A stretch of DNA of 64,000 nucleotides, taken from Eukaryota sp. TZLM1-RC (taxonomy: Eukaryota; Protista; Metamonada: BaSk clade). Positions 268-56,790 of the stretch are shown piece after piece. A program made the position numbers and the translations under genes. The notes below the pieces were generated by a model. That model saw nothing but the letters and a program-made list of their open reading frames with translations. It was not told where the DNA came from and ran no database searches. The stretch lies in NCBI GenBank assembly GCA_040285825.1, contig JAUPSS010000008.1, forward strand, positions 558,001 to 622,000, given 5' to 3'. Position 1 is the first letter of the stretch; each line of letters begins with the position of its first letter.

Positions 268-332
268 AAAAGATCTTGATTCATTTCATATTCCAGTATT
301 TGACATTTTTGTGTTATTAGCTGATGTCGGAT
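268..332 (+). ncRNA. Putative Fanzor right end / omegaRNA 3' hairpin (family 2) overlapping the ZNF277 start codon
   Basis: 297-328 matches 47234-47265 at 27/32 nt, and that copy follows a Fanzor C-terminal relic; ATTTGACAT (298-306) can pair with ATGTCGGAT (324-332). Confidence 0.55.
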
Positions 333-1430
333 CTCACTGAACAGCAAGTATTAGAACTAGTCCAAGAAGATCCAGCAAAGACCAACGACGTTGCAAGCTG
401 CTTTTTCTGCTGTTACACAAATGACTCTCCTCATGAAGTCGTCAATCACCTTGAATCAACTCATTTCTTCTCTATAGAGAATCCTGAAGCTATCAATGAC
501 TTACCTAGATACCTCCGCATCTACTCAAAGATTCTCACTGACAAACCCTCACCCTTCTTCCTCTCTACAGACCTCCCTAACGATGATCTGATTCGCAAAA
601 CCATCAACAAAGATAAGCTGAAAGTTATGCTCAACCTTCAACATCAAGAAAGAGCTGACGACACCACTGTAAGAACATGTATCTTTTGTCGCCAGGAGTT
701 CACTGGAGACCGCTCTCAAGTCTTTCAGCATATGTTTACCACTCACAACCTCAACCTTGGAAGAGCAGATGGGTTAGTCAATGTAGATAAGCTCTTGACA
801 ATTCTGCATTCAAAGATGGATGCTCTTGAGTGTTTGTTTTGTAATAGAGTTTTTCGAAATAGGGAAGCTTTAAAGAACCACATGAAGAAGAAGAATCATA
901 TTAAAGTTCATCCAAGCGACAAACTTTATGATCAATTCTATATAATTAATTATTCCAATCCTGGAATTGGTTGGCAGAAACTTGATAAGGAAGTTGATGA
1001 TGAGCTGTACACGTCAACTGCTGAGAGTCTTGCGGAATCAATGATCGATAATTGGTCTGATTGGACTGACGATTTCGAGCAGGAGGTAAATTGTCTTTAT
1101 TGCGATGAAGTGTTTCCTAATGTGGAAAAGGTTCTCAGCCACTTTAAATCAGTTGAAGACGTAGATTTTATTAATATTGTTGAAAATTGCACGTTAATGG
1201 AGTTTGTGCAGTTAGTTAATTTTTTGAGAATTTGTGCTTCAAAGCTAAGGTGTCCGGCTTGCAATGAAACCTTTGATTGTAAAGCTGATTATCAATCACA
1301 CGTAATCAATCAAGGTCATCAGTTGCCCTTGGAAAATGAACACATTTCTCCACAGTATTTAATTCCTTTCGATTCGAATGATCCTCTTCTTTTTTCTTTA
1401 GAAGGATTTAAGGATGATGATTTGAATTAG
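324..1430 (+). CDS. ZNF277: C2H2 zinc-finger protein, ZNF277-like
   Basis: CIFCRQEF..HMFTTHNLNLG, CLFCNRVFRNREALKNHMKKKNH, YDQFYIINY, WSDW..CLYC, YLIP...DPLL: the ZNF277 motif order. Confidence 0.85.
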   Translation: MSDLTEQQVLELVQEDPAKTNDVASCFFCCYTNDSPHEVVNHLESTHFFSIENPEAINDLPRYLRIYSKILTDKPSPFFLSTDLPNDDLIRKTINKDKLKVMLNLQHQERADDTTVRTCIFCRQEFTGDRSQVFQHMFTTHNLNLGRADGLVNVDKLLTILHSKMDALECLFCNRVFRNREALKNHMKKKNHIKVHPSDKLYDQFYIINYSNPGIGWQKLDKEVDDELYTSTAESLAESMIDNWSDWTDDFEQEVNCLYCDEVFPNVEKVLSHFKSVEDVDFINIVENCTLMEFVQLVNFLRICASKLRCPACNETFDCKADYQSHVINQGHQLPLENEHISPQYLIPFDSNDPLLFSLEGFKDDDLN

Positions 1431-1508
1431 AATAGTATTTTACAAATAAATAATCGATAAAGTTATCATTAAAAATGTTTACAAACGAATTGAATTTACA
1501 ATCAAAAT

Positions 1509-2393
1509 CTAATCAGCATCTAGTCGGAAAGCCAACTTCTTTCCACGGTGACCTTTCAACAGATCATTCGCCACATACCTTACCAGATTAGAGCCTTGAA
1601 TTCCAATGTCTTCTTTAATCAAATTAACAGCTTCAACACGTGCAAACCGAATTGTCTTGGCTCCTTCAGCAGTAGCATTAGCATTAATGATATAAGAGTC
1701 AGCCAAAGCTCTTGCATTTCGGACGCGTACATCAGCTGCCCTAATGGTTTGATCCAATTCTGTATCCTTTTCAGTGAGTCTATTATCTCTTTGGCTTCTG
1801 GCAACATCAATGTCTCTTTCTGCAGCCTGTCTGTTGCTAATAGCATCTTCAAACACAGACGGTAAATCAATGTCATGTAGTTGGAAAGCAGTGACTCTGG
1901 TCGAAATTGCTTGAAGTTTATCACGAAGAGTATCTTCCATATGGTTCTGTACAATAGACCGTTCAGAAAAGAATTGAATAGCAGTGTAATTGCTGGCGAC
2001 ATCGCGGCAAATAGAACGGATGAGACAACGTATAACTGGTCTGTATTCGGTAATGAATCTGTCAAAAATGTAGTTAATGTCTTCAATGGCAAGTCTGTAC
2101 TGGAGCTCCACCTCCATGGTGACTTCTAAGCCATCATATGAGCGGAGATCTAGAGGGTTGTTCTCTTCTTTGGTAAAATCTTCAGTGATTTCAGTAGTGG
2201 GATATTTGTAAAAGGAAAAGCCCGGTCCAAGAAAGTATCGACCTGATACCAGTGGTACTTCACGAACCTTCCCGGTCCATCCATTGAGAACAAGAGCAAC
2301 ATGAGCAGGTTCAACAGTATAAAAGGAAGACATAAGAATGACTCCTAACACAACGATTATAAAGATAACAACATGAGCTACTGGACGCCCCAT
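1509..2393 (-). CDS. SPFH/Band-7/prohibitin-domain membrane protein
   Basis: N-terminal TM helix, SFYTVEPAHVAL, SYDGLEVTMEVELQYR, IDLPSVFEDAI, C-terminal coiled coil. Confidence 0.9.
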   Translation of the reverse strand: MGRPVAHVVIFIIVVLGVILMSSFYTVEPAHVALVLNGWTGKVREVPLVSGRYFLGPGFSFYKYPTTEITEDFTKEENNPLDLRSYDGLEVTMEVELQYRLAIEDINYIFDRFITEYRPVIRCLIRSICRDVASNYTAIQFFSERSIVQNHMEDTLRDKLQAISTRVTAFQLHDIDLPSVFEDAISNRQAAERDIDVARSQRDNRLTEKDTELDQTIRAADVRVRNARALADSYIINANATAEGAKTIRFARVEAVNLIKEDIGIQGSNLVRYVANDLLKGHRGKKLAFRLDAD

Positions 2394-2475: not shown

Positions 2476-5150
2476 AATCCAAATGCATTTACCAAACCTA
2501 CATTGGAAATCCATACTTCATTTCAACTCCAGGCACTATTGAGCTGCCACATAGTTTAAGATGGACTGATATTTTCTTCTACAGAGATCTTCTTGACTAC
2601 TCTCTTTTTAGTTCCTCCCTGTCTTCCTTTAGCACCCGATGAGGATGTGCTTGTTTCAGGAACTTGCGATGGACAGTTTCTTCTGTTGTGGTCTTCTCCG
2701 CGACATAAACCACATCTTCTCGGTTTTTTGTCCTTCTCAGCAGTCTTCTTTTTCTGATCTCTCTGCGAAGTAGATGATCCATTTTCGAATTCTTTTGTTT
2801 GAGTTTTTGGTCTCTCGAAAATGGATGGTTCCAGTGAATCCTTCTGTTCACGCCATTCTTGTTGAAAATCTCTTTTTCTAGTAGGATTGTTTTGATTAAA
2901 TAAATCAATTTCTTGTTTTAATTTCTTTGCTTTTCTTTTTAGTTGTCGTTTGCCCTTAGGACCTAACACTTTAATACTAGAATCGTTGACACATTCTCCA
3001 AAATTTCCCTTGGCAGCACAACTGGAACAAGATTTACTCGTTCTATATTCATCAACTAGGAAAATTCGATAACCAAATCTTCTTAATAGTTTGCGGATTT
3101 CGGTTCCTCTAGTGGTTGTCCCTTTTCCCTTCCTTGTGTTTCCATTCGAGCTCCAGTCACCATAACCAATAACTACGTCTTCAGGGGAGCCAAAGGTCAA
3201 TTTGAATCTTTTCAACATGTTTCTTCACTTCTTTGATTATTCGAATACGTTTGAAATTTTCTTTTTCTAATCCATATTTCTTGGTAAAAAATATTCATAT
3301 GAACATTGTATCGCTCAAATTCCTTGATGTAATCATCAAAATGTTGACTGAAAAAAGATCTTTGTTGTCTGTTTGATACAGATAAAGAACATTGATTTAA
3401 AATATCCTGACATAAGTAATCACTATCAGGTAATTGTACTTTCCAATTTTTTTCAATTTTCTTTTTCCGTTCAACGATATTTGGTACTTTTTCTGTCAAA
3501 GTGTTATATTTGACCGTTTTCCACCAGTGTGTGGGTTTAAGTTGTGCATAATCAGAGTCAGACTTGGAATAGATTGATATATTTTGTAATTGTTTCTCTC
3601 TTCTTTTAATGCCTTTGCTTTTTTGCTCCTGATTTCTGGTAGTTTTCTTTTTTTATAAAACACATTTTGTGAAATTTGTTCTGGGGTAATAGTTACAGCA
3701 GGATTTGGAGAAACACAGTGCATTAAATCGTACTCGTTAGGGTCAATATCAACTATTCTTTTATCTTTTAACTTCAACTTTTCGTCATTTTCAGCAGACA
3801 AGGACTGTATGCATCGCTCTGGGTGCGCTTAAGTCTTGGAAATAGAATTTTTAAAAACATTTCCATTTTCATCAGCCATGTCTTTACGAATTAAGACCAC
3901 TGAACAAGCAATCCCGTCTGTTACAATTGAGGAGAATTTTAATTGAAAGCAACCTTTAGTCTCCCGTTTGTAGGAATCTAATACCTTATCAGTTAGTATT
4001 TCGGTAAAAACTGATTTTCTAATTTCATTTGCTCTCCCTTTGAACTTGCCAAATCTTTCATTGAGCCAATGACTATAGAGTCTTATATGCCGTGGAATCA
4101 ATGTAGTTGTCAATGGAAAAGGATTACTGACTGACAAAGGTTTGCCATCCTGGGAACAAAATGATTGAATGGTTCTGTTAATACTTAAAGCTTGAGAGAG
4201 AAATTTCAATGGCTTGGCTGATTGAGTATAATAAAGATTTTTACCCTTAATAAAAGTGGGAATTAAACAATGTTTCATTTTAGCAAAAAACTTTAAAGTC
4301 AAGTCTGACTGGGGAAAGGGAAAAACAATGTGATCATTGATAAAAAGTTTATCAAAGTTTCCACTGATAATGGCTTCCCTGAGTTTGTTGAAATTAGTTA
4401 ATAACTCTTTCTTCAGATGTTGTTCCTAAATTTGTTCTAGTCTGAACTTCTTCAAGGGGATAATGTTTAACCAGCGCAAAACGTATTCATGAAAGTGTTT
4501 GCTGAGATTATTGCCATAATTAATGGCAAGTTGTTTGGCTGTGTAGTGCGAAACTCGATTCATTGATGTATTACCTGGAAATTGAGTCCTTCTTTGAATA
4601 AGCTCATTATCAAGATTTTGTAGAATTGGATAAAAGAAATTCAGGTAGTTAAAACTAATTTTTTGTTTCAAAGTGTAATTCGAAATACCCTTATCTTCAA
4701 TTACTTTTTCGCTTCAATCTTTGATAGTTCCAGTTCTGAATTATTTGCGTTTGACTTCGCGACAAACATCCGCCTTAAAACTAATTTATTTGATGCTAAT
4801 TTAATTGATTCGGCTTAAATCTGGTAGTTGAATTGAGAAATCATTAAAATCGAAATACGCATCATAGTCGTATTCATGCATTGAATGCGCAGTTTCGATT
4901 GGGTAAAATGTTTCTTCAATCTGAAGGGCATCAAAATCATAACCATTCATCAAATCAATCTCTAACTTCCTTTACTCAGTATTTTCATATTGACACAGTA
5001 AGAAAAATTTAAAGAAGGATGTTCCTCTGATAGTAGCTAATTGGTTATTGTGAACACACTTACAAGTCAAAGTACGCTTGTCATGGTCGTTGATTGTTTT
5101 ATTTATTCTTCTTTTTACAACTGTTATTGTAGGTTTTTCGACAATTAATT
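2440..5150 (-). pseudogene. Fanzor1 (TnpB-like RuvC nuclease) pseudogene, frameshifted, with an inserted CCHC knuckle
   Basis: Fragments in the expected order: TVVKRRINKTI..IRGTSFFKFFLL; NYGNNLSKHFHEYVLRWLN; PRHIRL; FSSIVTDGIACSV; RuvC-I IVDIDPNEYDL; RKRKFQTYSNNQRSE; VVIGYGDWS; FLVDEYRTSKSCSSC; degenerate RuvC-III (CIWIWTYSSTYNIL). Confidence 0.9.
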
Positions 5151-9109: not shown

Positions 9110-9835
9110 ATTGCGCACTTATAACTTGCAATATTCTGTTTTAACCAAAAAAAGGCAGGGATTCTTGTTATATTTGAGGTGATTTGAAAATGTCACAATT
9201 GATTCTTTGATTACCATAACATTAGTAATTAAGCTAAACCAAAATGTGTTCATCTACATCCAAGGGAACACCAATAAGTTGAAAGCTAATTTCAGAATTG
9301 GTTATTCTATACTATCCAGTAATAAAATCAAACTTTTTATCATCAATCAAAGTCTTGGACTGATTACCTAGCAATACTAATGCTGATCCCAATTTATCAG
9401 TAGTCCTGGACTTTACTACTGTTCATCCCTGCAACAATTATGTATTTTTCAGTCAATGAAATGAGATTTGTATCATTTAGAAAACACTGAAAACGCTAAA
9501 GTTGAGAAGTATAAGGCTTAATTATTAGTTAAGGTTTGAATTGTCGTCCAATGTAGTTCAAACGGAAAACTATCACTAGAAGCAGGAACTTCTTTGAATG
9601 ATTTCCAAAAAATGGTTCAAGAAACAACAATGAAAAGATTTGCTAATTTTTTCATGGCGCTCTCGAATTCAATTTGCCATAATTAATAGATTGCCTCGGT
9701 GTTTCAATCGAACTAGAGAAGTTTTAGCGAGACATCAAGCACATTGAAATTTTGTAGAGGAAATCTTGGTTCAATGATTTTCGTCCCATTAGTTATGAAT
9801 TTATTTTGTTAAGTGTAAAAGTTTATTAAATATAA
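9110..9835 (+). mobile_element. Decayed RLE non-LTR fragments, including the 3' end of the ...EEILVQ* family
   Basis: 9556-9830 is homologous to 25600-25870. Confidence 0.7.
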
Positions 9836-9939
9836 TTCTTAAATTTTTCACGAATTCTGTGTTCGAAACTTCTGGATTCCTTTTCAAGACAAATTTTTAT
9901 TAATAAATTTATATAATTAATATTTCATGAATTTATTAA

Positions 9940-12170: not shown

Positions 12171-12369
12171 AATAGTTGAATCACCGTTATGTGACACAAC
12201 ACTACTTTTATGATTATTACTACTATATTCATCTATAATGAAAAGTACTTTGACTTTACACCACAGTATTCTAATTTAGTATTAAATTGAATATATTTTT
12301 AAAAATACAATCTAGAAATCACTACCTTCAAAACAAGCTTCCACACCATCAAACCGTACAACAGAATAG

Positions 12370-13480
12370 ACTTATAACTAATGGGAAAAAATTAATTGAA
12401 CCAAGATTTCCTCTACAAAATCTTGATCTGCTTGCTGTCTAGCTAAAGCTTCTGTTATTCGATTGAAAAACCTAGGTAATCTATTAATAATGGCAAATTG
12501 AATCCGAGGACGCCATAAAAATTATCAAATCTTTTCATTGTTTTTTCTTGAACCATTTTTTTGAAGTCATTCAAAAAAGTTTCTGCTTCTACTGATAGTC
12601 TTCCGTTTATCGAAAATGAGAAAGCAATAAAAACAAGCTGTGTATTTCTACTAGCATTAGCTTCTTCAATATCTTTATCATATTTTCTATGTTTTTCCTT
12701 TGCTTTAAAATCAAGAGCACTTACAGGATTAAGCTTTCTCCTTTGAACCAAAATGTCATTTGCAACATTAAAGGAGACAAAGTCAACACTAGCTTCAGAG
12801 TTCTCAATCCAATCACAGTATATATCACCTCTATCATCAGAACCAAAATTATTCAATGACAATGTTTCCTTCAGCGGAGGCTCTTTGATACACGATATTC
12901 TTGCAGTTTGTGCCATATTGAAAACAGTGTCTCCAGCAGCATCATGTAATGAAGAACGATCAGTTATCAATTTAGAACAATTCAGAGCATGGCGTAAATT
13001 GAGCTGAGGTGAATTCGAACAAATACATTTTTCTTTTGATAATAATTGATTAATGGCATTATTCAAATATAATCTCATTTTTGTTACAAATGCTTCATTA
13101 ATAGCACACAAGCCAAATCTTGGTGGTACAATGGTTACAAAAAATGAAGAATCTGATGACTTATTTTCACCAACACCCCTTTCCAATAACAATGAGTGAA
13201 GATCTTGATTTAAAACAGCCGAGCTGCATATATTTTCATAAAGATCATTTTCATACATTCCAGTCAATCGTTTCTGTAATGTTCGAAGAGTGTATTTTAA
13301 ATTTAAAAGATTCTTTTCTGGAATATTACCATTGAATGATTGGGGAAAGCATCGACTCCATTTTTCTACATTAATTTTTGAAATTTCTTTATTTAATGCA
13401 AAAATAGTCGAACTTTTTGTTGTTATCAATAAATCTTCTCAATCTGCAAATCTTTCAGAAAACTTCAGATTGAAATTCTA
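12370..13480 (-). mobile_element. RLE non-LTR retrotransposon (...EEILVQ* family), 5'-truncated
   Basis: CCHC CICSNSPQLNLRHALNC, RSSLHDA, EP, RGD..D, KAKEKHRKYD: zinc finger plus PD-(D/E)xK-type restriction-like endonuclease. Confidence 0.9.
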
Positions 13481-14119
13481 ATTTTGGGTGGTTCTTTAAT
13501 ACAAAACCAAACCAATGCAAACAAAACAAAAAGCAAATAAAAAGAGGATTAAACCAAAACAAATTAAAAAACAAACCGTTTTGCATTCTTAAATCTCATT
13601 TGTCTGACCCATATTGCTTAGTGTTTTGAGCTAATTTCCCAAATCAAATCTTCTCAAAAATTATCGGTACTGTGAACCATTTCTCTGCTCAATGTTTTCT
13701 ATTGTTTGCAACAGAGGTGAAAAGTAAATGTATTGTGACCAGTAGTGGAAAAATACAGAGTGTACACTGATTGCAGATATCTCCTTTGAATTTTGTGTAA
13801 AATGTTCCCATACAACCCAACGCCGGGAACGTGTCGTCAACAACCTGGACGACTGCTTGGCTTTGTTGAAGATTGTCCATAAGGAAGAAGTTGATGAAGA
13901 TTTGTGTATTAGATAGCAATCCAATTGTACATTTCAATTAGATTTTCAGTAAAAAGGTGAACTGACAAAAAGATACTATTTTGGTTCGATTTCGGTTTTG
14001 TCTACAAGAAAACAAAAAACCAATAAAGGAAAACTATTTACAACCCTATTTAATAAACAGCATTGTTAGAGGCCCCGAATTAAGTCGTTCAACCGACCTA
14101 GATCGCTGGTTGGTCGGCC

Positions 14120-14640: not shown

Positions 14641-14703
14641 TGCTATAGTTTTCGATCTTTGCACCCAGGCCTACTTCTAACATTGTATTTTCAATACATG
14701 TGA

Positions 14704-15504: not shown

Positions 15505-15515
15505 TTTCACGCTAA

Positions 15516-16610: not shown

Positions 16611-16612
16611 TC

Positions 16613-16819: not shown

Positions 16820-16830
16820 TTAGCGTGAAA

Positions 16831-20800: not shown

Positions 20801-20819
20801 TTCACCCTCAAAGTTTAAC

Positions 20820-45000: not shown

Positions 45001-46216
45001 ATCTACTGTCGAGGAAGGTGACTTTGACATTGTCTCATGTGAAAAATTCAACTTTTTAGTTAAGCCCAAACTGCCAGCTTTTGTATTGAATCATTTCAAT
45101 TCACCTAGATCCAAAATTTTCAAACCCGTCAATAGCTGGTTTTCAGACATTTTTGTTCCCGCCAATCATCTCAATACTCCCGCATTGCATTTAGCTTTTC
45201 TTCCCCCAGAATTCAATCTCTATAATGGTATTGAGGATCTTTGTCATTTGACTTATCCTTTCAATGCAATGTTACCTAATCATGTTTTACTAGCCAACCT
45301 AGTTTGCTTTCTGAGTTCTACACCTCTTGCGCTCTCTAATGATTGTTCTGTGGCAATTAAAGTTTTGGAGCTAATGTATGTCGTTGGTTTGAAAAAAATG
45401 AATGAAGCAAATTTTGCTGATGTCAGGAAAAACAAGGCAGTCTTCCGTGGCCTTGGAGAAAAGGTTTCTATTAGTCAACTTCGTTCTATTATCACAGAGT
45501 ATATTTTGCATATGCTTACGTCTATCAATTCACATTCTTTGTTCTCTTCATTAGACACATCTGTTTTCTTCTGTCAACCATTAGAGGTGTTCAGTATTGA
45601 AGTTGGTTGCTTGACCACAGAGAAGACTTTTACTATTGATCAATCAAATCCACTCTCCAGTCTGGTTCTTCTTGATTCAAGAGACCCTCTTGTGCTTATT
45701 GTTCCTCTCTCTGGATCCTTTAGTGTGCCAGGAGTTTTTGGGTTGGTTGTAGTGAATTGTTCCAAGTCCATCGTTTGCATTAGTGCTCCCAGTGGTTTTG
45801 ATTCATCGAACTTATACAAAATTGTACTACTTCTGGATAGTATTGAACCTCAATTATTTATTAGGCAATGGAACATTCTCCGAGTACGAGATCACTCTTG
45901 TGAGTATCTAAGTTGGTCTTCTGTAGTCAAACGCGCTGAGCATAAGAAAAACTCCACAATTAGTGATGTCAATGATTCCTTAACATTGTCTCTGGATTTG
46001 GATCTCTCTCAATCTGGTGAAGAGATTACTTTTAATGGATTGTGGCTTGATCCCCTCGTTGACTTGTTACAAACTCCTATTGTTTTTGGAGAGATGAAGT
46101 CAGAACCTAAACTTGTTGGTAAAGAGTTTATAGAAACATGTGACCAGTTTGTGTTGCTAATTGAACACGGGCCTGGTAACGTGGAGTTGCATTTGCAAGG
46201 CTCTTGTTCTCAATAA
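39056..46216 (+). CDS. Giant GT2-family processive glycosyltransferase (2386 aa) with a long N-terminal extension
   Basis: TM helices, IADNGN, GNKT, TIDDD, QDVEY, GAISMW, GEDL, QRIKSW, further TM helices. Confidence 0.8.
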   Translation: MSEGGFSSSSDTNSHDHTPLSTKPHHSPEIRTIFRPSFAPNSHSRSQISRSNSPLKYQGSVLSSPNLLKEPHRYIKLHPRDSSPLSPLSELNSRPSSPCSPTSQSASPPALLSALSPPPNPSAHHPKSKLSKKSSIGTKSTASLATVSSLTSDRFDSVVRRVSNDPDLSRMHSIAKLPRAGRLCSSLADVDGAFDRTESNKEILSLLSNQSVDNGNWSLLVKIFDSQIVPRLRSINSKSNEHLLCNHLRLDSDKTNHSWVTFFDDAGLFSPVKHKKGHKQGQKSQESQEQSFLDLELTRLELKSQYDSAYSAGLSLSPSDLIGVTVSHVGEDHNSHEVAASQVNIGLLYFARVATIINVNQRFLSQFLNCGEVEFGLDLLYECFVLSRLLLTSLGNSDLDDVIIDSPPVGFTYSDPTLEKLFSSFSDFSTELQHQAAFYFKYLVSILKTISERTSNLSYLLLLNSQIENVLFNIETFSISELSVEFVELIQLKTEICCKLTSNNLSIGNSYEDSLILLKADLIRYSNFLNHINKDFVISGVTQSLNHLISFLLGQLDLERIHDFDPCKLYSDNSFQSISSEYFLDSNGEVDSVDMNEVVSGLNISNVIPTELIPWFCDLFDCLLPIKSPILAVCGMKLSAHFLINLDFPKTLYYLLNSLKCCTFVSPSIISINQLVNFLIWFFACFHSVHETLQFLSNLSNPIETNFTTRNQSNYITSRNQNSNQSFVSWFDSFLSQLDEGIKIGSFWSDMSAIDSFQTCFSSITHKISNLRTVHHRQQLINQIKRILKTFYSSTELCISYTDVYSSLEECLEDLADYDEIKCRKEEDLMFTWIELIKVVDYNMRYVTSLFSRIVSERRRLGFCNKKKKHNLIKQKNCFSLIQLLHESKLVLTDSLKISKVLAKSVLFGSKAAQEEITRSKFMPPLKILSQYSIKDQNLSVFDKLSSLLWSRLVKITVDLSDTLLQIFAFHHSWKRLCNSVTMLTFVYHQRPLFLSPFSSSVCLLWNEIQRYPTELVKDIGEGVCFDYKESYCKMSVVAHNDDVVVQNDDVFDSDPEDLVEFDDHSITEVRVSKSVAGVSSLPKVQLAVPNKEIEFIRRQCSCHHPFAIQSLLYLGTQYYKEGFFDHSKILLLECLEVCLNSPDIPINVLVTVWNDLFKIAKQTENPYELLSWLNEQESYYKHLKSESNEAVSKYLELLGEASLLVRQDKVSHTRYLYQLRYSEEVSSSVTTASVARILHLNREYAFLFLKENAHAEVSTVLENSLSLHSNYSNPADVGFLSDWHLYSKTKLVLAKNFEGEGRYVDGSVELEKALAKRPSVVPLHDNLSSRLFDEIFRLRSLDVDQQKEPAPPTETHVFAFVFGEYRAAISLVKARFPSFSEKFTSFSNPENLSEFKSLLKSVPHFSNICGSLAKLLAAGTRFSESITVYKFQLFCMSCLLPTDHHSFSAVWKKLLFAYSQQLRSTRDLIEFIDSERQNFGSFLPPSHCLITLLDSESKKLTERMARLEKWLAVGGFYTLYFVIGIFFFFFAPPINQILSFWNRNTSWTYFLLWSVEFVLLVLALYLVRWPQLPNDSADQRRISRIQRSKTINKCCLVITTHRSADIIAQTLKSALKIFPANKIYIADNGNSTNPLDNTREVVAQCDPSINYHWISTGNKTLATWWTVSYCVQEDFVMTIDDDVLLPQDLVIPLDEFEDGQTKCLAFTIRADNLCKANGKLNIIAHFQDVEYKLAGLFKLFQSKIQSSLCPHGAISMWERETFMKVLKRHNCTFHGEDLQCGLVLHELNKNYRIATVGRVCVPTTVPDHLLCRKLFKCKCASGYSLLVQRIKSWDITAHRFSIRLIGLLLFYWKRNTFVLKPFIIFELWTVIMDWIRVSLLIYIIMQNPFVFLLGMTVTHAIYTIFLVFFNYWVLRDRHDLRSPILVVLLFPFYRYLLLLFRAIALVHNLLYYTPFVRNRIAIKDRNDLPLPPKFEEEISLLSTVEEGDFDIVSCEKFNFLVKPKLPAFVLNHFNSPRSKIFKPVNSWFSDIFVPANHLNTPALHLAFLPPEFNLYNGIEDLCHLTYPFNAMLPNHVLLANLVCFLSSTPLALSNDCSVAIKVLELMYVVGLKKMNEANFADVRKNKAVFRGLGEKVSISQLRSIITEYILHMLTSINSHSLFSSLDTSVFFCQPLEVFSIEVGCLTTEKTFTIDQSNPLSSLVLLDSRDPLVLIVPLSGSFSVPGVFGLVVVNCSKSIVCISAPSGFDSSNLYKIVLLLDSIEPQLFIRQWNILRVRDHSCEYLSWSSVVKRAEHKKNSTISDVNDSLTLSLDLDLSQSGEEITFNGLWLDPLVDLLQTPIVFGEMKSEPKLVGKEFIETCDQFVLLIEHGPGNVELHLQGSCSQ

Positions 46217-46734
46217 ATCTTTGTCCTTTGTTTTTTTGAACTTACATCTTAGATATTCAGTGAACTCAACTATAAGTGAATAACCCTTATTTACTGGGTC
46301 ATTTACGAAACTGTTGGTTACCCCTAGAAAAGACTGTATCACTGTTTATTGTATATAATTACGAATGCAGCGAATGAGACTTACTGAGGAAAGGGCCTGA
46401 GAGACAAGCACTGTTGTGAAATCTGATGAAACAAGCATCACATAATAATAACAATTGTAGACCAACGGTATTGTAAAGGCTAGTGAGTGATTGAAGCGAA
46501 AGTTTAGAGTGGTGTTTAATCAATAATCATCTATAGAAACACGCATTGTTTGAGTTAGCAAAATTGAAACAAAATATTTATAAAACTATCCAACACTGAG
46601 GAATTGGATCCCTATTCGTTATAACTACTATTAATTTGATAATAAATTAGCTATAATTCTTTGCTATTATTGAGCCATAGAGAGATTTGAAGTAAAATTA
46701 ATAAATAATGGATAAATAAGTTTCACAAAATAGC

Positions 46735-47040
46735 ATTGTAGTGATGGGTGATAAAAGCAAACCAATTTTTAAGCGTAAAGCAGCTACAAAAAAGATTGGT
46801 TATCGAAAAATGTTTAAAAAACGTAACTTCCGACTATTGCTGCTGGGTAATTAAATAGAACAAGTTGTCGATGTCATGCATGTGTACACAAGGGGAAAGA
46901 AGGTGAGAAAGTAAAGAAATATCGCGTACCTAATGGAAGACCATACAGGAGAGCAGAGACATCAACGGCCCTGAGACATGAATTACTCACTTGCAAGAAG
47001 TGTGGATCAGTATATTAAAGGAAAGAAAGACCTCCTGTCA
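46735..47040 (+). pseudogene. Fanzor C-terminal relic (not in the ORF track)
   Basis: IVVMGDKSKPIFKRKAATKKIGYRKMFKKRNFRLLL / RTSCRCHAC..PNGRPYRR..LRHELLTCKKCG. Confidence 0.85.
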
Positions 47041-47177: not shown

Positions 47178-47268
47178 GGAAAGATCAACTTGATTTGTTT
47201 CATCTTCATATTACACCAAGCTCAACAGGTTACTATTTGACATTTCTGTGCTGCTAGCCGATGTCAGT
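47178..47268 (+). ncRNA. Putative Fanzor right end / omegaRNA hairpin (family 2) overlapping the ATG of the RING-ARM gene
   Basis: Shared with 268-332; TTGACAT (47237-47243) can pair with ATGTCAG (47261-47267). Confidence 0.6.
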
Positions 47269-49987
47269 CTGTAGTTTATGTAAGGCCACCAGCTGCACAC
47301 TACGGTTTCCTTCTCCTTGTACCCATTCTTTTTGTTCTTCTCATACATCTTCCATACTTTTTGCTCTTGAATTAGATCTTATCAACTCTTGTCCTCTCTG
47401 TACTGCTGATCCATCTACCATCAATAATGCAATCTCTTCCATCACCCAAAAACTAGATTCTCTGCACTTATCTATTCAAGCGCTACGAAACGACCTATCT
47501 TCTAATGAACTTCTTGCACTTAAATACTCCTCCCTACTTGAAGTCCTTACAAATCTATCCACTTCCACTAAATCTCTCACGTCTCCTCTTGCTTCTACCC
47601 ACTCTTTCTCTCAGCTTTTAACCCTTCAACATCATGAGAATATTCTCTGCAATATGGACAAGCTTTCGGAGGAGGATTTTGTTGCGTTTGAACAGTTTCT
47701 TTTAACTTTAGTTTCAAAAGATCTTTTTTTCAAGTATTTGTTTGCCATGATTAAGATGTTTCCTGAGAAAAATTCTATTATTTCTTTGTTAATCCCTTTT
47801 AGCTCTTCTAATATTGATCACGTCATCAACTCTGATGATGACGTCATTTGTCAACTGTCAAGATCACTTTCCAGTTATATAATACCTCAAGTTTTAAGTA
47901 TTATTGATTCTTCTGCAGAAAACAAGCGAAACGAATGTCTAACTGATTCTACATTTTTTATATCTATTTTTATCACTTGTTTGAATTCTCAATCTTCAAA
48001 GCAAGCAAAGTCTAGATATAGGGCAATTCTATTTCCCTCACTTATTACAAAAGATTTCAGTCAAATGGTTTTTAAAATTCTAAGCCTAGAGCCTAGCCAA
48101 GAATTTTTACCTATTTTTAAAAATTGTTTCAATACCCTTTATCCCTGCACAGTTTATGAAAAGTTTGGTAAATTCTTTGCTAATTTTGATCTGATTAGCC
48201 GACTTTTAAGTCTCTTAGCTCAATTTTCAGATTCAAATTCTTTTGCTCTTAGCTTTACTCTCACTTTGGTTGAACCTTTAACAATTGCTCTTGGATATCT
48301 AACCAGAATTGACACTGTTAAAAGAATGTTGCCCTCGATTGAGCCCTCCAATGGATTCACATTGCTTGTTGAGACATTATCCAGGTTGGAAAAGGAAAGA
48401 ACGGGTGATCTGACTCCTAAAGTTACTTCTTGTATAGCCAAAATTGCTGGAATCTTGTGGAATGGTTCTTCTGATACTAAGAATAGAGAATTTATTGGTA
48501 AATTGGGTCTTGACATCATCACAACTCTTGTTTCAACTCTAACAAAATTTTCTACACATGATTTGAAAAGTCCAGAAAATGACGTGGTGATTGAGAATGT
48601 TGTAGGATTTCTTTGGAATATAGTTGTTCTTCCTGAAAACAAGCTTCTCATGCTTAAAAGCAATGTTATACCTTTATTAGTCCAGTTTTTTCAACACAAA
48701 AAGCTAAACATTCTCAAAAACTCAACTGGATGCCTGTGGGTTCTATCTTCTGACGGACAAGTACGAGATTATATTCAACGAGAATTATCAGGAGTTTTTC
48801 TTCAAAATTGTTTCAATATCTTCAGTTACATCTTCAATAATTCAAAGTCTCAGTTAGGTGACGTTACTGAACATGTTGCAGGCATTTTGAGAAACTGCGT
48901 TCTAAATGATGGTTTCAAAAGAGATTTGATTAAGTTTCCCAATGGTTTACTAACTTTGTTTAAGGTTTTGGATATGGGTTCTTCACCATCAATTTCCCCC
49001 AACTTGCTTGATAAGGTTCTATCAGTCTTGTGGATTATTTCAGGAATTTCCGAATCAAGCAGTGTTTTTGGTACCATTGATCAACAGTTGATTGAGGTTT
49101 TGATTTCATACACTCATCCCCAACAAGATCCCAATATTAATGAAAAAGTTTTGGGAATTCTTCGGAATATCACGTCATATTCTGATGTAAGACCTGTCTT
49201 CTCAAATACATCCCTAATCAAGATTTGCTTGCTCTTTCTATCGTCTTGTACCCATGCAGATGAAACGTCTCATGACGTGTTACAATCAGAAATGATTGCC
49301 TCTAACGACAGTTCTCCTTGTGACTTTGCATGTGTTATTCTTGCCAATTTAGCCAGAGATGCAAGCTTCAGAACCAAACTAATTGAATCAGATCTGATCA
49401 ATCACCTTATTTCTCATCTTACATCGACGGTGGTGAGCTGCAGTCTTGCTGAAAATGTACTCATTGCTATTCAGTCAATTTTGATTGCCGAAGATGAATC
49501 TTTCAATGTTGTCATTGATGAACCTTTACTCAATCTATTGTACTCTTGCTTGTTTTCAGTCCTCTCCTATCCTGATACCCCCAGATTTGTCACAGAGAAT
49601 GCTCTCGCTGCCATCTTATCCAGTCTGAAGTATAGCTCCAGGACACATAAGGGACTTCGAATAAGGAATCTTGAATTGTTTTTAAAATTGTTATTTGATT
49701 CAGAAGCAAATAACTTGGACCCTTTCACCACTTTCTTGCTTCAAAGCCAACATGAACATGTTGTCCGTGATGTCTGCCGTCTACTTAACATTCTCCTCAA
49801 CCTTGATGATGATATAACACGTCGAATATGTACTAGGGATGTGCTGTTTGAGTTGGTACAGTTGAGCGGTTGTGACTCGCAGGTTATAAGAAAAGCATCT
49901 GCTTCATGCTTGGCAGCTGTGGCAAGGGTACCTGAATTGAAGGAAAAACTAAAGGAAATTGCTCTAGATCAATCTTCGTGTAATTAA
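47261..49987 (+). CDS. RING-like finger + coiled coil + armadillo-repeat protein (possible E3 ligase)
   Basis: CSLC..CTHSFCSSH..CPLC; repeated AGILWN, VGFLWNI, TGCLWVLS, AGILRN, LGILRNI ARM signatures. Confidence 0.8.
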   Translation: MSVCSLCKATSCTLRFPSPCTHSFCSSHTSSILFALELDLINSCPLCTADPSTINNAISSITQKLDSLHLSIQALRNDLSSNELLALKYSSLLEVLTNLSTSTKSLTSPLASTHSFSQLLTLQHHENILCNMDKLSEEDFVAFEQFLLTLVSKDLFFKYLFAMIKMFPEKNSIISLLIPFSSSNIDHVINSDDDVICQLSRSLSSYIIPQVLSIIDSSAENKRNECLTDSTFFISIFITCLNSQSSKQAKSRYRAILFPSLITKDFSQMVFKILSLEPSQEFLPIFKNCFNTLYPCTVYEKFGKFFANFDLISRLLSLLAQFSDSNSFALSFTLTLVEPLTIALGYLTRIDTVKRMLPSIEPSNGFTLLVETLSRLEKERTGDLTPKVTSCIAKIAGILWNGSSDTKNREFIGKLGLDIITTLVSTLTKFSTHDLKSPENDVVIENVVGFLWNIVVLPENKLLMLKSNVIPLLVQFFQHKKLNILKNSTGCLWVLSSDGQVRDYIQRELSGVFLQNCFNIFSYIFNNSKSQLGDVTEHVAGILRNCVLNDGFKRDLIKFPNGLLTLFKVLDMGSSPSISPNLLDKVLSVLWIISGISESSSVFGTIDQQLIEVLISYTHPQQDPNINEKVLGILRNITSYSDVRPVFSNTSLIKICLLFLSSCTHADETSHDVLQSEMIASNDSSPCDFACVILANLARDASFRTKLIESDLINHLISHLTSTVVSCSLAENVLIAIQSILIAEDESFNVVIDEPLLNLLYSCLFSVLSYPDTPRFVTENALAAILSSLKYSSRTHKGLRIRNLELFLKLLFDSEANNLDPFTTFLLQSQHEHVVRDVCRLLNILLNLDDDITRRICTRDVLFELVQLSGCDSQVIRKASASCLAAVARVPELKEKLKEIALDQSSCN

Positions 49988-50628: not shown

Positions 50629-51142
50629 TCAATTGAAGTGAACCAGCTGGAGAAGTGGCACGCCTGTGTTATTGTGTAATTGGTGGCAAACAATGAAATA
50701 CATACCAAAAAGCTTCACATCCCACTTTTAGGCCTTTTTTTGGCTTGGTCAAAATCGTCCCCAATAACGAAAATTTGACTATTGAACTTCCTCAATTAAT
50801 TCTCTTTTGAACAACAACTGTTATTTAAGCAAAATATTGTATTTCTTAATTGAGTCTCTCATTAGCAAAACTTCAGAAACTTGATTAGTTGAACAAGTTG
50901 TGAAATAAGGAAGTTGTGTAAACAAGTTGTGAATGTAGGTACACGTGTACCTTTGTTATACGGCGTAATAAACAGTAGTATTTTTTGTAAATCCAACAAG
51001 TAATTGCCATTATTTGTCAATTAATTCAACTAATTGCAATAATTGATTGGTGACGATTTATCTTTATGAATTAATTACCAATTCAATTTTGAAGACCACT
51101 GTCGATGGTTTTACTAAAATTTCTACAAAGAAGTCCAGAAAT

Positions 51143-52123
51143 ACGTCAAGCTCTTTGATAAGTCAATAAAAAGGAAGACGACACTTTGTGGAATGGAAGT
51201 ATACACTTTCTGAAATGTAAATAATTCTGATCTTTTGCTGAAAAATCTATACAGAATTGGTGATAGAATCATATTGAGCTACTCTGTTGAACCTGAAAAA
51301 GACAACACTTCTATCTACTATTATTGACCTTATTTGTGATTTGCACTTGTGTGATCAAAACCCACTTATTATTCAGAATTAACATATTTTTACAAAATAA
51401 TTCCACAAAATTTGTTCAATGCCCAGTGCCCAAAAGGAAAGAAGACAGCCTACTCGAGTGTCTACTCGTGTTAAGACGCAGCCAAAGTTGTGGGCTCCTG
51501 TAATTGGCCAACCAAAGCCAAGATCTCTCAGCATTGAAATTTATGAAGGACAAGGAACTCCTCTCGGAAATCTTGAGCAGGTTGTCGAAGCTCTCACCAG
51601 TTACGAAGGTACTCCTTTTATTGTAGATCTCCACGAAATTCTCTTCAACAGACGTGCAAAGGCATATCCTCATCTTGAGAATGTTCTCCAGTTTTCGGGC
51701 TTCCCTATGGAAGATGAAGAAACTGAAGAAGAAGCAATTGAAAGAATCGAGTTAGACCTTCACCGCTACAAGACCAACCTTCTTAAGCAGTGTGTGGCAG
51801 CTTTTGGTCTCAATGCGGAGAAACGCAAGGATGACATTGTTTCCATCCTTGCCCATTTTCTTTTTAAGCCATCCAATGATGCGATCGTCACAGAACCATC
51901 ACATGCAGCAAGACGTACCGGTCTCAAGCGTAATACCAAGGACAGGACCATCACTAACATAAAGAAATCAGTCAGAGATCAAGGTGCAAGTCCTGTTCAA
52001 CCAAGAAGAAAACGTCGCAATGTTAATAACTGATTTTTTTGTATATAATGTACTTTTATTATAAATTGTTTTACAATAATTAATTTTTCAAAATTGGAGG
52101 TTTGTATTGTTATTCAGATTATT
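51143..52123 (+). repeat. Direct duplication unit carrying DEK (second copy at 53518-54503)
   Basis: Near-identical ~980-bp segments. Confidence 0.92.
51419..52033 (+). CDS. DEK: DEK-like chromatin protein (pseudo-SAP/SAP region), copy 1
   Basis: GQGTPL, LHEILFNR, NVLQFSGFP, LKQC...GL, KDDIV..L..FL.KP. Confidence 0.8.
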   Translation: MPSAQKERRQPTRVSTRVKTQPKLWAPVIGQPKPRSLSIEIYEGQGTPLGNLEQVVEALTSYEGTPFIVDLHEILFNRRAKAYPHLENVLQFSGFPMEDEETEEEAIERIELDLHRYKTNLLKQCVAAFGLNAEKRKDDIVSILAHFLFKPSNDAIVTEPSHAARRTGLKRNTKDRTITNIKKSVRDQGASPVQPRRKRRNVNN

Positions 52124-52229
52124 TGTTGAGCGTCTTGGTAAGGTAAAGTTAACAAACATTCTTTTACGAAATTGATTTATGTTAATAAACATTTTACTAC
52201 ACCACATATCTGTTATTTTAAACAATATG

Positions 52230-52550: not shown

Positions 52551-52640
52551 ATGAGAGAGCAGCTTTCAGTTAATTCTTTTTGTCTGATTTTGGATATGAA
52601 GATAAAGAGTTTTAGGTTTGTTGCTTAGTTTATTGAATTA

Positions 52641-52777
52641 TGTTCTTGTTGAACTTGAATTGAATTAGTAGGTTTTTTTGTATTTCGACTGATGACGTGA
52701 TACTCGTTTATGAATCTGTTTTATTAATAAACTTAGATTTCTCTCTCCTTCGTGTGTTCATCTGCTTAACGGCATCA
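52641..52777 (+). mobile_element. Solo LTR of the 28525-29352 family
   Basis: TG..CA ends, strong similarity to 28525-28663, ATTA target-site duplication on both sides. Confidence 0.9.
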
Positions 52778-53798
52778 ATTAGATGGAACTTTGTTGAAAA
52801 ATTCTTAGAAATTTCTTAAATTTGGTTTTCATTTTATTAAGACGATGCAAGTCTTAAGTTATTTGGGCACATGATCATTTGAACACACTGGTGATCACAC
52901 AACTTCTTATTACTACATGTCAATTATTAGTTGATGTCCCAAAACCCTTGAAACCATCGATACCTCTTTTATAAATGATTAGTGTGGACATTTTTACTAA
53001 AGTTCATTTTGTCATCTGAATGATGAAAACTGTTCAAATATTTATATTATTTGGATGGATTTGTTTTAGAATTTTTCATTAGTTTTTAAAAGAGGATGTT
53101 ATTGAAGTGATTCAATGTCGCAATTGCCCAATTTGATCTTGCTTGCGTCATATATTCAAGATTTTCAACTCAACTGAAAAGTTCAAAATTAGGAATGTTT
53201 GAACAATATGCATATTGTTTATCAATAGAAATTTCTTAAAATTGGGAATCCTAGATTGTGGTTCAATTCTATCACATAACAACGTTGATTCATAAGACAC
53301 AATAAACAGTTTGAAATGCCAGATGATAATTCTTTTCAGGAATTCAATCCATTTAAGTTACGATAGAATTCTAATAGAGTTCTGAGTAAATTTTCAATTT
53401 TTAAACCCTGTTTCATCATAAGTGCTACTTTACCTAAGGGTTTGTTGGGCCAGAGGTAAATGCTATTGTCAATTGATACACATCAATTTTGTTTTGAAGA
53501 TTAGGATTTCATATAACACGTCAAGCTCTTTGATAAGTCAATAAAAAGGAAGACGACACTTTGTGGAATGGAAGTATATACTTTCTGAAATGTAAATTAT
53601 TCTGATCTTTTGCTGAAAAATCTATACAGAATTGGTTATAGAATCATATTGAGCTACTCTGTTGAACCTGAAAAAGACAACACTTCTATCTACTATATTA
53701 ACCTTATTTGTGATTTGCCCTTGTTTGATCAAAACCCAGATCCACTTATTGTCCGGAATTAACATATTTTTACAAAATAATTCCACAAAATTTGTTCA

Positions 53799-54413
53799 AT
53801 GCCTAGTGCCCAAAAGGAAAGAAGACAGCCTACTCGAGTGTCTACTCGTGTTAAGACGCAGCCAAAGTTGTGGGCTCCTGTAATTGGCCAACCAAAGCCA
53901 AGATCTCTCAGCATTGAAATTTATGAAGGACAAGGAACTCCTCTCGGAAATCTTGAGCAGGTTGTCGAAGCTCTCACCAGTTACGAAGGTACTCCTTTTA
54001 TTGTAGATCTCCACGAAATTCTCTTCAACAGACGTGCAAAGGCATATCCTCATCTTGAGAATGTTCTCCAGTTTTCGGGCTTCCCTATGGAAGATGAAGA
54101 AACTGAAGAAGAAGCAATTGAAAGAATCGAGTTAGACCTTCACCGCTACAAGACCAACCTTCTTAAGCAGTGTGTGGCAGCTTTTGGTCTCAATGCGGAG
54201 AAACGCAAGGATGACATTGTTTCCATCCTTGCCCATTTTCTTTTTAAGCCATCCAATGATGCGATCGTCACAGAACCATCACATGCAGCAAGACGTACCG
54301 GTCTCAAGCGTAATACCAAGGACAGGACCATCACTAACATAAAGAAATCAGTCAGAGATCAAGGTGCAAGTCCTGTTCAACCAAGAAGAAAACGTCGCAA
54401 TGTTAATAACTGA
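53799..54413 (+). CDS. DEK: DEK-like chromatin protein, copy 2 (identical protein)
   Basis: Same 204-aa translation as 51419..52033. Confidence 0.8.
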   Translation: MPSAQKERRQPTRVSTRVKTQPKLWAPVIGQPKPRSLSIEIYEGQGTPLGNLEQVVEALTSYEGTPFIVDLHEILFNRRAKAYPHLENVLQFSGFPMEDEETEEEAIERIELDLHRYKTNLLKQCVAAFGLNAEKRKDDIVSILAHFLFKPSNDAIVTEPSHAARRTGLKRNTKDRTITNIKKSVRDQGASPVQPRRKRRNVNN

Positions 54414-54787
54414 TTTTTTTGTATATAATGTACTTTTATTATAAATTGTTTTTCAATAATTAGTTTTTCAAAATTGGAGGTTTGTATTGTTATTCAGATT
54501 ATTGGTTCATGGGGAATCAGATTTTCTTGAAAAAAGTGGACACTTGACTGCAAAGCTATTTTACATTATATCTTATTGTTTTGTTATCTTGAAATATATC
54601 CAATTAATCGATTGATTCAGACAATATTAGGAAGAATTCTACATTCCAAACAGCGTTGTGTCAACTGAAATTTGATCGATGTTCCTTACCAAAATCTAAC
54701 AATATAGCAAAATGCAAAAATCAAGCTCTAATGTTGTTTAACAATCTACTGAACACTTCTAGAAAATGCTCAATTTACACCAAAATG

Positions 54788-55945
54788 TTATATCTTCAAA
54801 CAACCAACTGGCTTGTTTTCTTCCTCTCCCTTTATTCTACTCAAAACATAAGTCATTGCAGGCCCTGTTCTAATCTTTAAAAATGCTTCATCTTCACCAA
54901 AAGAGAACTTTCGGACTTGTTCAGGGAATTTCCTACTAACTTCCAAAACTTCATTTTCATCAGTAATTACCAGGAAACTGTTAGCCATGGCAGAGATCAT
55001 AACTGCTGAGTACTGATTAACCGAGTCCTCGCCAATGACGGTATCAGGTTCTAACAACTGCTCTGAACACAATTCTTTGTCCCAATGCCAACACCTGACA
55101 GAACCACAGTCTAGCAGCACTGCCCCGCAGTACCAGCTAATAGAAACAGCAGCAACACGGACCTTGTCGAAAACTTCCAAGTGAGAGGGGGTAGCAATAG
55201 AGTCAGTGATACCAGGAAGTTGGGATTTGTGATTGGAACCAAACCCAAAGACCCTCCCAAAGGTGGTTGCAAGTAAAGAGGTTGATTCACCACAAGCAAT
55301 GTGGGTAATGTGTTCACCATCTTCCAAGGTTAAAGGAACAATGCTTGGTTTGGGATAAATTCCAAGTGAGGTCATGCCACATTGACCATGTTTATTATCC
55401 CCAAAACAGATTAGTTCACCTGAAGAAGTTAAAACGAGTGTGTAATCTCCACCACAAGCAACCATCGTGGCTTTTCTTGGTCCAATATTGATTTTGGTGG
55501 GTAGAGAGAATGGGGAACATGAACCAACTCCACATTGACCCTTAGTGTTCATGCCAAAAGTCCATACGTTTCCATCAGTTGAGACACAAGCACTGTGAAA
55601 GAGTCCGCAGGCAACATCCTTGATAGGCTCAGAGATGGGAAGTTTTTGCGGGGAGGAGGCAAAGTTGATGTTCTCTATGCCGAGCTGGGTGTTATCGTTT
55701 CTACCATATGCATAGACATTACCGGATGAAGAGAGGAAAAGGACAAAATCTAGAGAACAAGAAATGTCTGAAACTGATATGTACTGAGAATCTAAATGTT
55801 TTACAAGTTCGGGAACCTCACGTTTGCGACCAGAAACTCCAGTGCCATAAATGTAGACACGTTCGGCACGTACTGCATCATGACTGGAGCGTGTGCGAGA
55901 AAGCGACTCTGACCTGTCTGCTGGTAGCGAGAAATTTTGTCCCAT
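54788..55945 (-). CDS. RCC1-repeat protein with a putative N-myristoylation motif
   Basis: First ATG gives MGQNFS; repeats GNVYAYGRNDNTQLG, VACGLFHS, VWTFGMNTKGQCG, VACGGDYT. Confidence 0.9.
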   Translation of the reverse strand: MGQNFSLPADRSESLSRTRSSHDAVRAERVYIYGTGVSGRKREVPELVKHLDSQYISVSDISCSLDFVLFLSSSGNVYAYGRNDNTQLGIENINFASSPQKLPISEPIKDVACGLFHSACVSTDGNVWTFGMNTKGQCGVGSCSPFSLPTKINIGPRKATMVACGGDYTLVLTSSGELICFGDNKHGQCGMTSLGIYPKPSIVPLTLEDGEHITHIACGESTSLLATTFGRVFGFGSNHKSQLPGITDSIATPSHLEVFDKVRVAAVSISWYCGAVLLDCGSVRCWHWDKELCSEQLLEPDTVIGEDSVNQYSAVMISAMANSFLVITDENEVLEVSRKFPEQVRKFSFGEDEAFLKIRTGPAMTYVLSRIKGEEENKPVGCLKI

Positions 55946-56049
55946 AAAGATAGGTAGGGTTGGGTTGAAATCAAACTGGGAATTTCCCACCAAATCGATA
56001 TTGAATCGATATCGCCACAACAATGATGTAAACTTCTCAGTACCAAGGG

Positions 56050-56790
56050 TTAGTATACACTAAACACCTTGGAAATACGTTGATGAAAACAGCTACTGCT
56101 GTCTCTTTAATAAAACTAGTTAGTCTCTTTTGTCTTCTTATGAAAAAATCAAACTTATTTCTTTTAAGTTTTTTTTCTTGCACCACGCTGCAAGTTTCTA
56201 CACATAATTGAAGAATATTCAGGCTCTTTATCAGATTCAGAAACATAAGGTAAACTTATTTCAATCAGATACTCTTGAAAGCTCTGAGCGGAATAAGTAT
56301 TAGGATTTGCTTGAGTGAGAGGAGGAGGGTGATTTGATTTTCGCTCTTTTGGGTTTAGCAGCAGGCCAGAACCCTCAAACACAGGTGCAGAATTTCGGAA
56401 AGAACCAGCAGTCCAACCACAAAGATTGCTGTGGTTGGGATCAATGGCTACAAAAAACAAATTTTCATCAGGATCACTGTAATTGGGCTGTTCATTCGTG
56501 GTCTTCGCTGTGTATTTGCTTTTTTATGGACATTACAATTTCTTTTCCTTTCAGAGTTATGGAAATCATAATTTCCAGAGACGCGTTTCGACTCAAGTTA
56601 CGCTTTAGTTGGCCGACTATATGTTTTCCATGCCTTATGGGTGAACAAAAACCGCAAATATTTACCATCTGAACATATGGTAAAGTTCATAAATTGAGAT
56701 TTATAAAAAAACCGATAAGAGTTGTTCACAAACTTTTTGGTTTCATTTAGCTTTGTGAAATAAGCTATGGCTTTTTTATCCAAACTACAG
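56050..56790 (-). pseudogene. Fanzor relic (TDG motif, RuvC-I, bridge helix; C-terminus missing)
   Basis: FTICSDGKYLRFLF; LFFVAIDPNHSNL; SFQEYL; NKFDFFIRRQKR, in the same order as in the other Fanzors. Confidence 0.7.

Follow-up and report, generated by a model that had tools for sequence, protein, structure and literature searches.

The closest described relatives of the system reported here are the Fanzor1/OMEGA elements, exemplified by SpuFz1 and PpFz1 (Saito et al. 2023, PMC10432273; Jiang et al. 2023). These carry the gene of a TnpB-like RuvC nuclease at their 3′ side, followed by a conserved non-coding tail extending as far as the right end, which is the site of the omegaRNA and of its flank-derived guide; their 3′ ends are conserved and their 5′ parts are variable. 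The natural targets and the role of eukaryotic Fanzors are largely unknown. In assembly GCA_040285825.1 (Eukaryota sp. TZLM1-RC), a 64,000-nt stretch of contig JAUPSS010000008.1, here called the window, holds elements with such a nuclease gene, a conserved tail and constant 3′ ends; their right ends repeatedly lie on start codons, the would-be guide flank being the first codons of a host gene. On balance, we favour the view that they are Fanzor1 mobile elements with integration in a fixed orientation, directly upstream of host start codons or overlapping them, and that their tail is likely to be the control region of the gene. TZLM1-RC is the type strain of the soda-lake metamonad Skoliomonas litria, which is free-living and anaerobic (PMC11603281), and the G+C content of the DNA is 32–40%.

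Fanzor right ends at host gene starts

The right-end motif of the first of two element families (family 1) has three matches in the window against 0.01 expected by chance and, as the sequence-only reading had claimed, stops 1–2 nt before the ATG of three unrelated genes, at 2393 (−), 20718 (−) and 33209 (+). One of these ends (33166–33208, +) abuts HDDC2 (33209–33775, +): the Fanzor frame stops at TAA 33166–33168, and the tail to the host ATG, inside which a hairpin is predicted, is only 40 nt long. Upstream of a 122-aa open reading frame (ORF; 20350–20718, −) that opens at a family-1 end, the last 85 nt of the right end (20719–20803, −) are followed by a 775-nt fragment of a repeat, here called X (20804–21578, −), which lies within the Fanzor 3′ region, and by a relic Fanzor body (21529–22834, −) with 91% identity to 31923–33130. 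The third gene, which encodes an SPFH/Band_7 protein (1509–2393, −), is preceded by a solo right end of 46 nt (2394–2439, −) with no family-1 body upstream. Further upstream lies a divergent Fanzor relic (2559–3828, −), found with E 2e-23 by our own Fanzor profile hidden Markov model (HMM), built from relatives of at least 180 aa; its RuvC-II motif DEYRTS is intact. Part of this relic (2559–3224, −) holds a basic stretch and a CCHC-like knuckle beyond the RuvC-II/zinc-finger region, and its stop is reached without a readable RuvC-III motif.

Fanzor ORFs or relics had been described upstream of, and co-oriented with, six genes of the window, and by tblastn and our own HMM the description held for five of them: the SPFH gene, the 122-aa ORF, HDDC2, the RING/ARM gene starting at 47261 and, weakly, a 381-aa gene (33787–34932, −). 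For the last, two collinear HMM matches (E 2e-4 and 1e-3) delimit a C-terminal relic with the zinc-finger and RuvC-III region (35029–35428, −), which stops ~97 nt short of the ATG. Upstream of the sixth gene, RCC1, the supposed relic (55946–56790, −) gave no HMM hit and a best tblastn E of 0.055, and is thus not supported.

A homologue search returned ~25 family-1 protein fragments in the same assembly, and ten of their loci were analysed together with the region upstream of the ZNF277-like gene of the window (positions in these loci carry the prefixes L002 to L014). Contig depth of the Fanzor body relative to unique DNA gives a rough figure of ~12–17 similar copies, in which case much of the young family is represented in the sample. 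A total of 16 distinct family-1 right ends were identified on 8 contigs, including that of the window, and an ATG stands at the aligned position, 40–43 nt past the Fanzor stop, in all 16. For 13 of the 16, this ATG opens a co-oriented, unrelated host ORF of 122–1,073 aa (P = 1.6e-13), while merely 6.5% of ATGs in the same DNA open at least 100 codons (background set of 6,414 ATG triplets in 184 kb). Among the young copies (bodies 86–96% identical), 11 of 12 are docked in this manner (P = 9e-13), and the element–gene junction is fixed within 0–4 nt. The recognisable host domains are mutually unrelated: HD phosphohydrolase, Band_7, Acyl_transf_3, GHMP kinase, TPH-domain, WD40, NPL4-like, Metallophos and CPSF_A, of which the CPSF_A case surfaced by chance among 44 control gene starts that had not been picked for Fanzor. 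Two further flanks beginning GAATG came from loose ends of sequencing-run contigs (X1/X2).

The second family repeats the arrangement. Its 32-nt block, 27 of 32 positions being identical and the ATG included, occurs at 297–328 and 47234–47265 (ATGs 324 and 47261), as had been noted before; these two matches in the window compare with 0 expected. One right end (268–323, +) abuts ATG 324 of the ZNF277-like gene (zf-C2H2_2; 324–1430, +) and is conserved through ATGTC with 47181–47265 and L014:1700–1797. The other (47181–47260, +), downstream of a family-2 Fanzor relic (46720–47015, +; HMM E 4e-7, also found by tblastn), abuts ATG 47261 of the Armadillo-repeat (RING/ARM) gene (47261–49987, +). The ZNF277 end had been taken for an orphan, which it is not: a family-2 relic lies ~2 kb upstream, outside the window (L008:4300–4960), with other repeats between. 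Together with L014:1793, the start of a 471-aa gene, all three family-2 ends are at real gene starts (P 2.7e-4). Within the relic upstream of the window on the same contig (L008:4579–4962), the RuvC-III position reads WNRNVNA, with Asn in place of the expected Asp.

As the sequence-only reading proposed, 13 of 16 family-1 and 3 of 3 family-2 ends are thus positioned, almost to the nucleotide and always in the same orientation, at translation starts. Insertion at one landmark, in a fixed orientation and far above chance, is what marks a site-specific element. The ATGs concerned are real starts: in three of the proteins (HDDC2, GHMP kinase and Metallophos phosphatase), conserved N-terminal motifs begin 1–10 residues past the ATG. 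For example, HDDC2 has invariant residues from residue 11 and starts where short homologues start, and the kinase motif (L005) begins at residue 10. Gene calls start at the docked ATGs except in L005, where the call lies 81 nt downstream and loses the N-terminal motif of the kinase.

Alternatively, the motif might be a generic promoter or initiator of the host that only looks like a Fanzor tail, and it does stand where an initiator would presumably be expected in a metamonad, to judge from Giardia and Trichomonas. However, it is absent from 42 of the 44 other gene starts, and the two exceptions are one clear docked end, that of the CPSF_A gene, and one probable, decayed end before a ubiquitin-conjugating enzyme gene. 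Moreover, among these 44 starts no native promoter motif resembling the end, nor any shared native motif, was found, and in most copies the motif is continuous with at least 40 nt of Fanzor coding sequence. The generic-promoter reading is already contradicted by the present data, and we give it next to no credence.

Retained tails and the alternative of selective survival

The 3′ ends of the sampled copies are constant, while 5′ truncation is variable and leaves from 26 nt to nearly the full length. Old relics keep their last 26–46 nt at 90% identity or more, with bodies that are 71–81% identical or gone. A decayed family-1-like tail (TTCCATTG ... TAGAATG; L002:11440–11487), its Fanzor body gone, abuts the start codon of the ubiquitin-conjugating enzyme gene. 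Foreign repeats come no nearer than ~80–100 nt to the ATG in three docked copies. The retained tail and the repeat-free last stretch are both consistent with functional constraint acting on the terminal portion of the tail.

The repeats in question lie within the Fanzor 3′ region and are co-oriented with the host ATG (window 20804–21578, L002:6962–8799 and L008:4960–6945). The 3′ part of X is found beside both family-1 and family-2 tails; X also occurs at 97–220 and 61402–62063 of the window, at L004:8376–8616 and at L006:623–1161, the last copy overlapping a 571-aa ORF. Perhaps X, too, inserts by preference at a set distance from gene starts; otherwise, insertions any closer would not be tolerated. 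The 775-nt X fragment and the final 85 nt of the Fanzor tail form a composite that occurs twice with 93% identity, once before the 122-aa ORF and once, at L008:103–918, before the CPSF_A gene, and the homology ends at the G of the ATG; a tail can therefore travel to a new gene start without an adjacent Fanzor body.

Could the pattern be one of survival only? Under such an explanation, insertion would follow nothing more than a weak preference for an ATG-containing tetramer or pentamer, copies elsewhere would be excised or deleted, and those at start codons would be kept because the gene depends on the end. The genome is very compact, with gaps of 11–78 nt between convergent genes, and both the short pieces kept by old relics and the distance of at least 80 nt that other repeats keep from the ATG agree with this explanation. 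Yet the young copies are nearly all docked, and many kb of neutrally decaying repeats persist in the same DNA, so that undocked copies of that age should still show; nor does retention alone predict a junction fixed to a few nucleotides. Because placement is far from random, precise and already present in young copies, orientation-specific integration is favoured over retention alone, which we consider unlikely.

Selection may nevertheless act after integration. The last 30–90 nt of an element would be the only proximal upstream sequence of the gene and could function as its core promoter or leader, in which case selection would preserve the tail as the remainder of the element decays. Such a role is probable in view of the anatomy of the end and established Fanzor biology. 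A transposon tail would then have replaced the proximal promoter or leader of many unrelated genes, including five host genes in the window and one with a relic ~97 nt upstream.

Retained ends could also be domesticated regulators, that is, guide-RNA genes with which a Fanzor acting in trans, possibly nuclease-dead, binds the 5′ end of the adjacent gene and tunes its expression. Ends that are kept without bodies, and the NRN that the L008 family-2 relic carries at the expected RuvC-III Asp, are what such a system might leave. However, pieces of 26–46 nt are much shorter than known Fanzor scaffolds and the sample holds no intact Fanzor gene, so we judge this explanation very unlikely. TnpB-derived RNA-guided repressors reportedly exist in bacteria, which would be a precedent for such a system.

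The family-1 element, its predicted terminal hairpin and a possible basis for target choice

The family-1 nuclease is a Fanzor1. An ORF piece at 32305–32922 of the window matches the solved Fanzor1 structures of PpFz1 from Parasitella (9cf0, E 6.5e-16) and SpuFz1 from Spizellomyces (8gkh, E 1.4e-10), and its relatives carry Pfam PF07282. Four copies (window, L002, L007 and L010) have readable RuvC motifs, namely AADPG, IDEFRTS (directly followed by a Cys cluster) and WNRDRNA. A RuvC-II Glu a few residues before the zinc finger is a feature of Fanzors (PMC13565253), and the family-1 copy fits this layout.

The near full-length element of the window (27723–33168, +) encodes one broken polyprotein that consists of an N-terminal part without an assigned domain, a PolB-type exonuclease (PF03104, E 1e-14) upstream of Fanzor, and Fanzor1. 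The same layout, with the exonuclease being of the 3′–5′ type, was observed at 27767–33168 of the window, L007:2201–6451, L009:5385–8094 and L010:3323–8130. The window copy contains a nested insertion (28524–29352) flanked by 142-bp direct repeats (28522–28663 and 29211–29352, 99.3% identical; a third copy lies at 52638–52779), as well as a 190-bp tandem duplication (31039–31228 and 31224–31413, 99.5%). Neither a separate transposase gene nor a terminal inverted repeat was found in the family-1 element, and the Pfam and Atlas searches of its ORFs, which covered the N-terminal part, returned no reverse transcriptase domain. An IS200/IS605-like HUH (Y1) transposase was likewise looked for and set aside, no such domain being present in any element ORF; one could act in trans.

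On the left side, three copies share a region that reaches at least 80–90 nt to the left of a TGACAAG motif. In L007, this sequence had been considered as an older eroded right end, which comparison with L009 and L010 ruled out: it belongs to the left region of the element itself. The start codon of the element lies within ATGTCA, ~40 nt past TGACAAG (window 27723–27775), a layout like that of the family-2 tail (GACAT ... ATGTC). To go by this resemblance, the family-1 left region might contain a family-2 tail that docked long ago on the Fanzor gene.

By consensus, the right end is predicted to fold into a terminal hairpin in which TCATTG pairs with CAATGR around an inner 5-bp stem, so that the start codon is in the predicted 3′ arm. 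Pairing is found in 93.6% of cells in the 10 gap-free copies, against 29–54% after one arm has been shifted along the other. All 15 aligned copies have a purine at position +4, as compared with 59% in other genes, and nothing is common past +4. Being present in 16 of 16 ends, including those without a gene, and able to pair with the internal CAT, the ATG behaves as part of the conserved end while it is also the working start codon of the host. The boundary between element and host is thus at or just after the ATG, unlike the earlier picture, which had it before the ATG. In family 2, the ATGTC conserved in three of three ends is complementary to an upstream GACAT, the same design as in family 1. 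The family-2 copies are too few for a covariation test. Free-energy folding does not by itself favour this stem in particular: its z-scores are not significant and the minimum-energy folds differ among copies. The family-1 right end has no match in Rfam, and a 30-nt intron (GTAAAA...ATAG) considered in the tail was dropped, as nothing supported it.

These features suggest how integration could be directed. The right end would finish in a hairpin whose 3′ arm is (N)AATGR in family 1 or ATGTC in family 2; the complementarity of this ATG motif to an internal motif (YCATTG or GACAT, respectively) may specify the target, whether it acts at the DNA level or in the terminal part of the omegaRNA scaffold. 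So short a motif is far too common, and a second determinant, some property of active gene starts, would be needed to restrict insertion to real start codons; open promoter DNA, an initiation factor and selection are examples. New copies could strike the same ATG again, with older ends pushed upstream.

Several observations weigh against integration at start codons as proposed here. A target of 4–6 nt is by itself insufficient for start-codon specificity, as AATG sites open long ORFs in only 6.6% of cases. The covariation claimed earlier for the family-1 hairpin is not significant: its level was reached in 81 of 500 shuffles, and a single copy supplies both compensatory changes. The end at L007:6449 has a mutated hairpin and opens only a 41-codon ORF, hence no gene, and the L014 copy has lost its 3′ part including the right end. 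Frameshifts or stops break every sampled Fanzor ORF, and no transposase domain was found in the element ORFs by the searches given above. The full-length copies (n = 3) have neither a target duplication nor a clear motif common to their left flanks that could serve as a target-adjacent motif, and their left boundary is not exact to the nucleotide. Furthermore, most loci were chosen through Fanzor protein matches and form a sample rather than a whole-genome scan, and the HDDC2 protein homologue search gave no match closer than 45% identity. Contigs from three runs of one sample (apparently labelled DNA) over 30600–36500 of the window, X1/X2 among them, contain none that crosses the element–gene junction, no usable ends and no empty-site joint. 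Matches to the end motif in two metagenome contigs are due to chance, the contigs being AT-rich and unrelated.

Re-use of a site was nevertheless seen. Two of the 16 family-1 ends (27705 of the window and L002:5702) are directly upstream of a younger docked copy, and each is followed by an exact copy, of 12 and 10 nt respectively, of the start of the same gene. In the window, the older relic (27235–27714, +) is just to the left of the younger element; this fourth family-1 copy of the window is partly deleted and ends at 27702–27714, and its right end is followed by the copy of the HDDC2 start (27703–27714). The exact gene-start copies behind the older ends indicate that the same ATG was hit twice, with a short duplication. 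A target-site duplication is confined to these two stacked cases, being absent from seven other copies and from all full-length ones.

Placement might instead be guided by RNA: the omegaRNA guide of a docked copy would start at the ATG or just after it, and cleavage at gene starts followed by copying from the 3′ end inward, whether by DNA repair synthesis or by reverse transcription, would generate new docked copies, many of them 5′-truncated. Constant 3′ ends with variable 5′ truncation would follow from such copying, 8 filler nucleotides are present at one 5′ junction, and Fanzor omegaRNAs are known to cross the right end into flanking DNA. Moreover, the duplicated gene starts end 10–15 nt past the conserved end, near the reported Fanzor guide length of 14–15 nt (PMC13565253). 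However, the flanks of related copies share only the ATG and one purine, so a guide match cannot have picked the new sites; the element encodes no reverse transcriptase, and the stacked older and younger copies in the window belong to different lineages that are 76% identical. We therefore regard both forms of this explanation, with either copying step, as doubtful.

A related and equally tentative possibility is that docked ends are working omegaRNA genes, in which the scaffold ends on the host ATG, the guide is made of the next codons, and a Fanzor in trans reads the start-codon context as its target-adjacent motif (TAM), either driving insertion into empty alleles or regulating the genes. 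The favoured reading likewise includes, by inference from the anatomy of the end and established Fanzor biology, an omegaRNA whose guide would correspond to codons 2–6 of the host gene. If docked ends are working omegaRNA genes, they would form a genome-wide RNA-guided system addressed to translation starts, and hence a natural start-codon gene drive or a means of gene regulation.

Other features of the window are a 3.37-kb inverted duplication (12360–15724 and 16611–19972, 97.8% identical), made up of a repeat family that has further parts at 24742–25864, 9560–9836 and 59582–59884 and encodes a 396-aa ORF (24628–25818) with no recognised domain; a 994-bp direct duplication (51140–52127 and 53515–54507, 97.9%) with a 204-aa ORF in each copy; and a single 2,386-aa ORF (39056–46216) with a family-2 glycosyltransferase domain in its C-terminal third.

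Comparison with known mobile elements

Beyond the features shared with Fanzor1/OMEGA elements, the present elements differ from them in that they sit at start codons, in that the protein is fused to a PolB-type exonuclease, and in that no transposase or terminal inverted repeat was found. No Fanzor or TnpB element at start codons is described in the full-text literature searched, including a Fanzor preprint and a 2026 review (PMC13565253). The start-codon landmark is thus unreported for Fanzor1, and co-option of the tail is likely. Homing, safe-harbour and regulatory models become directly testable in this natural system, and the targeting rule, if worked out, could inform start-codon-adjacent knock-in strategies.

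Two further classes of element share single traits with the docked copies. CryptonS elements have TATGG at both termini, and Fanzors occur inside Cryptons (PMC13565253); a short ATG-containing core common to element terminus and target is the point of likeness, whereas here no tyrosine recombinase was found and no core repeat was shown at the left end, and no start-codon preference is reported for Cryptons. Replitron-1 has ‘fuzzy' right ends that can carry a few right-flank nucleotides of the donor, together with variable short duplications (Craig 2023, PMC10288648). The two stacked ends resemble these, although Replitrons have no link to start codons.

Elements of the IS200/IS605 group have subterminal hairpins and no terminal inverted repeats, and a 4–5 nt target, which doubles as the TnpB TAM, is paired beside the hairpin. 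Their target choice was reportedly traced to internal sequence by Barabas and colleagues in 2008. The predicted family-1 hairpin and the short ATG motif complementary to an internal CATT may correspond to this layout, although covariation in the hairpin is not significant. As the only candidate site-specifying feature is an ATG motif complementary to an internal motif, the present elements would resemble IS200/IS605 in their choice of target, and also Fanzor scaffolds that include a 3′ target copy. In IS200/IS605 the target is at the left end, whereas the ATG motif of the present elements is part of their right end, and their ORFs yielded no HUH transposase; moreover, a tetranucleotide of the IS200/IS605 type does not account for the restriction to real gene starts.

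For that restriction, the nearest parallels are Ty3, which inserts at RNA polymerase III start sites, and the tRNA-gene-targeting elements of Dictyostelium, both of them retrotransposons tethered to Pol III factors. With these, the docked Fanzor elements share nucleotide-precise, orientation-aware insertion at gene starts and a safe harbour in a compact genome. They differ in having protein-coding targets and the ATG as the landmark; mobile elements positioned so exactly, to the nucleotide, where protein-coding genes start would be a rarity.

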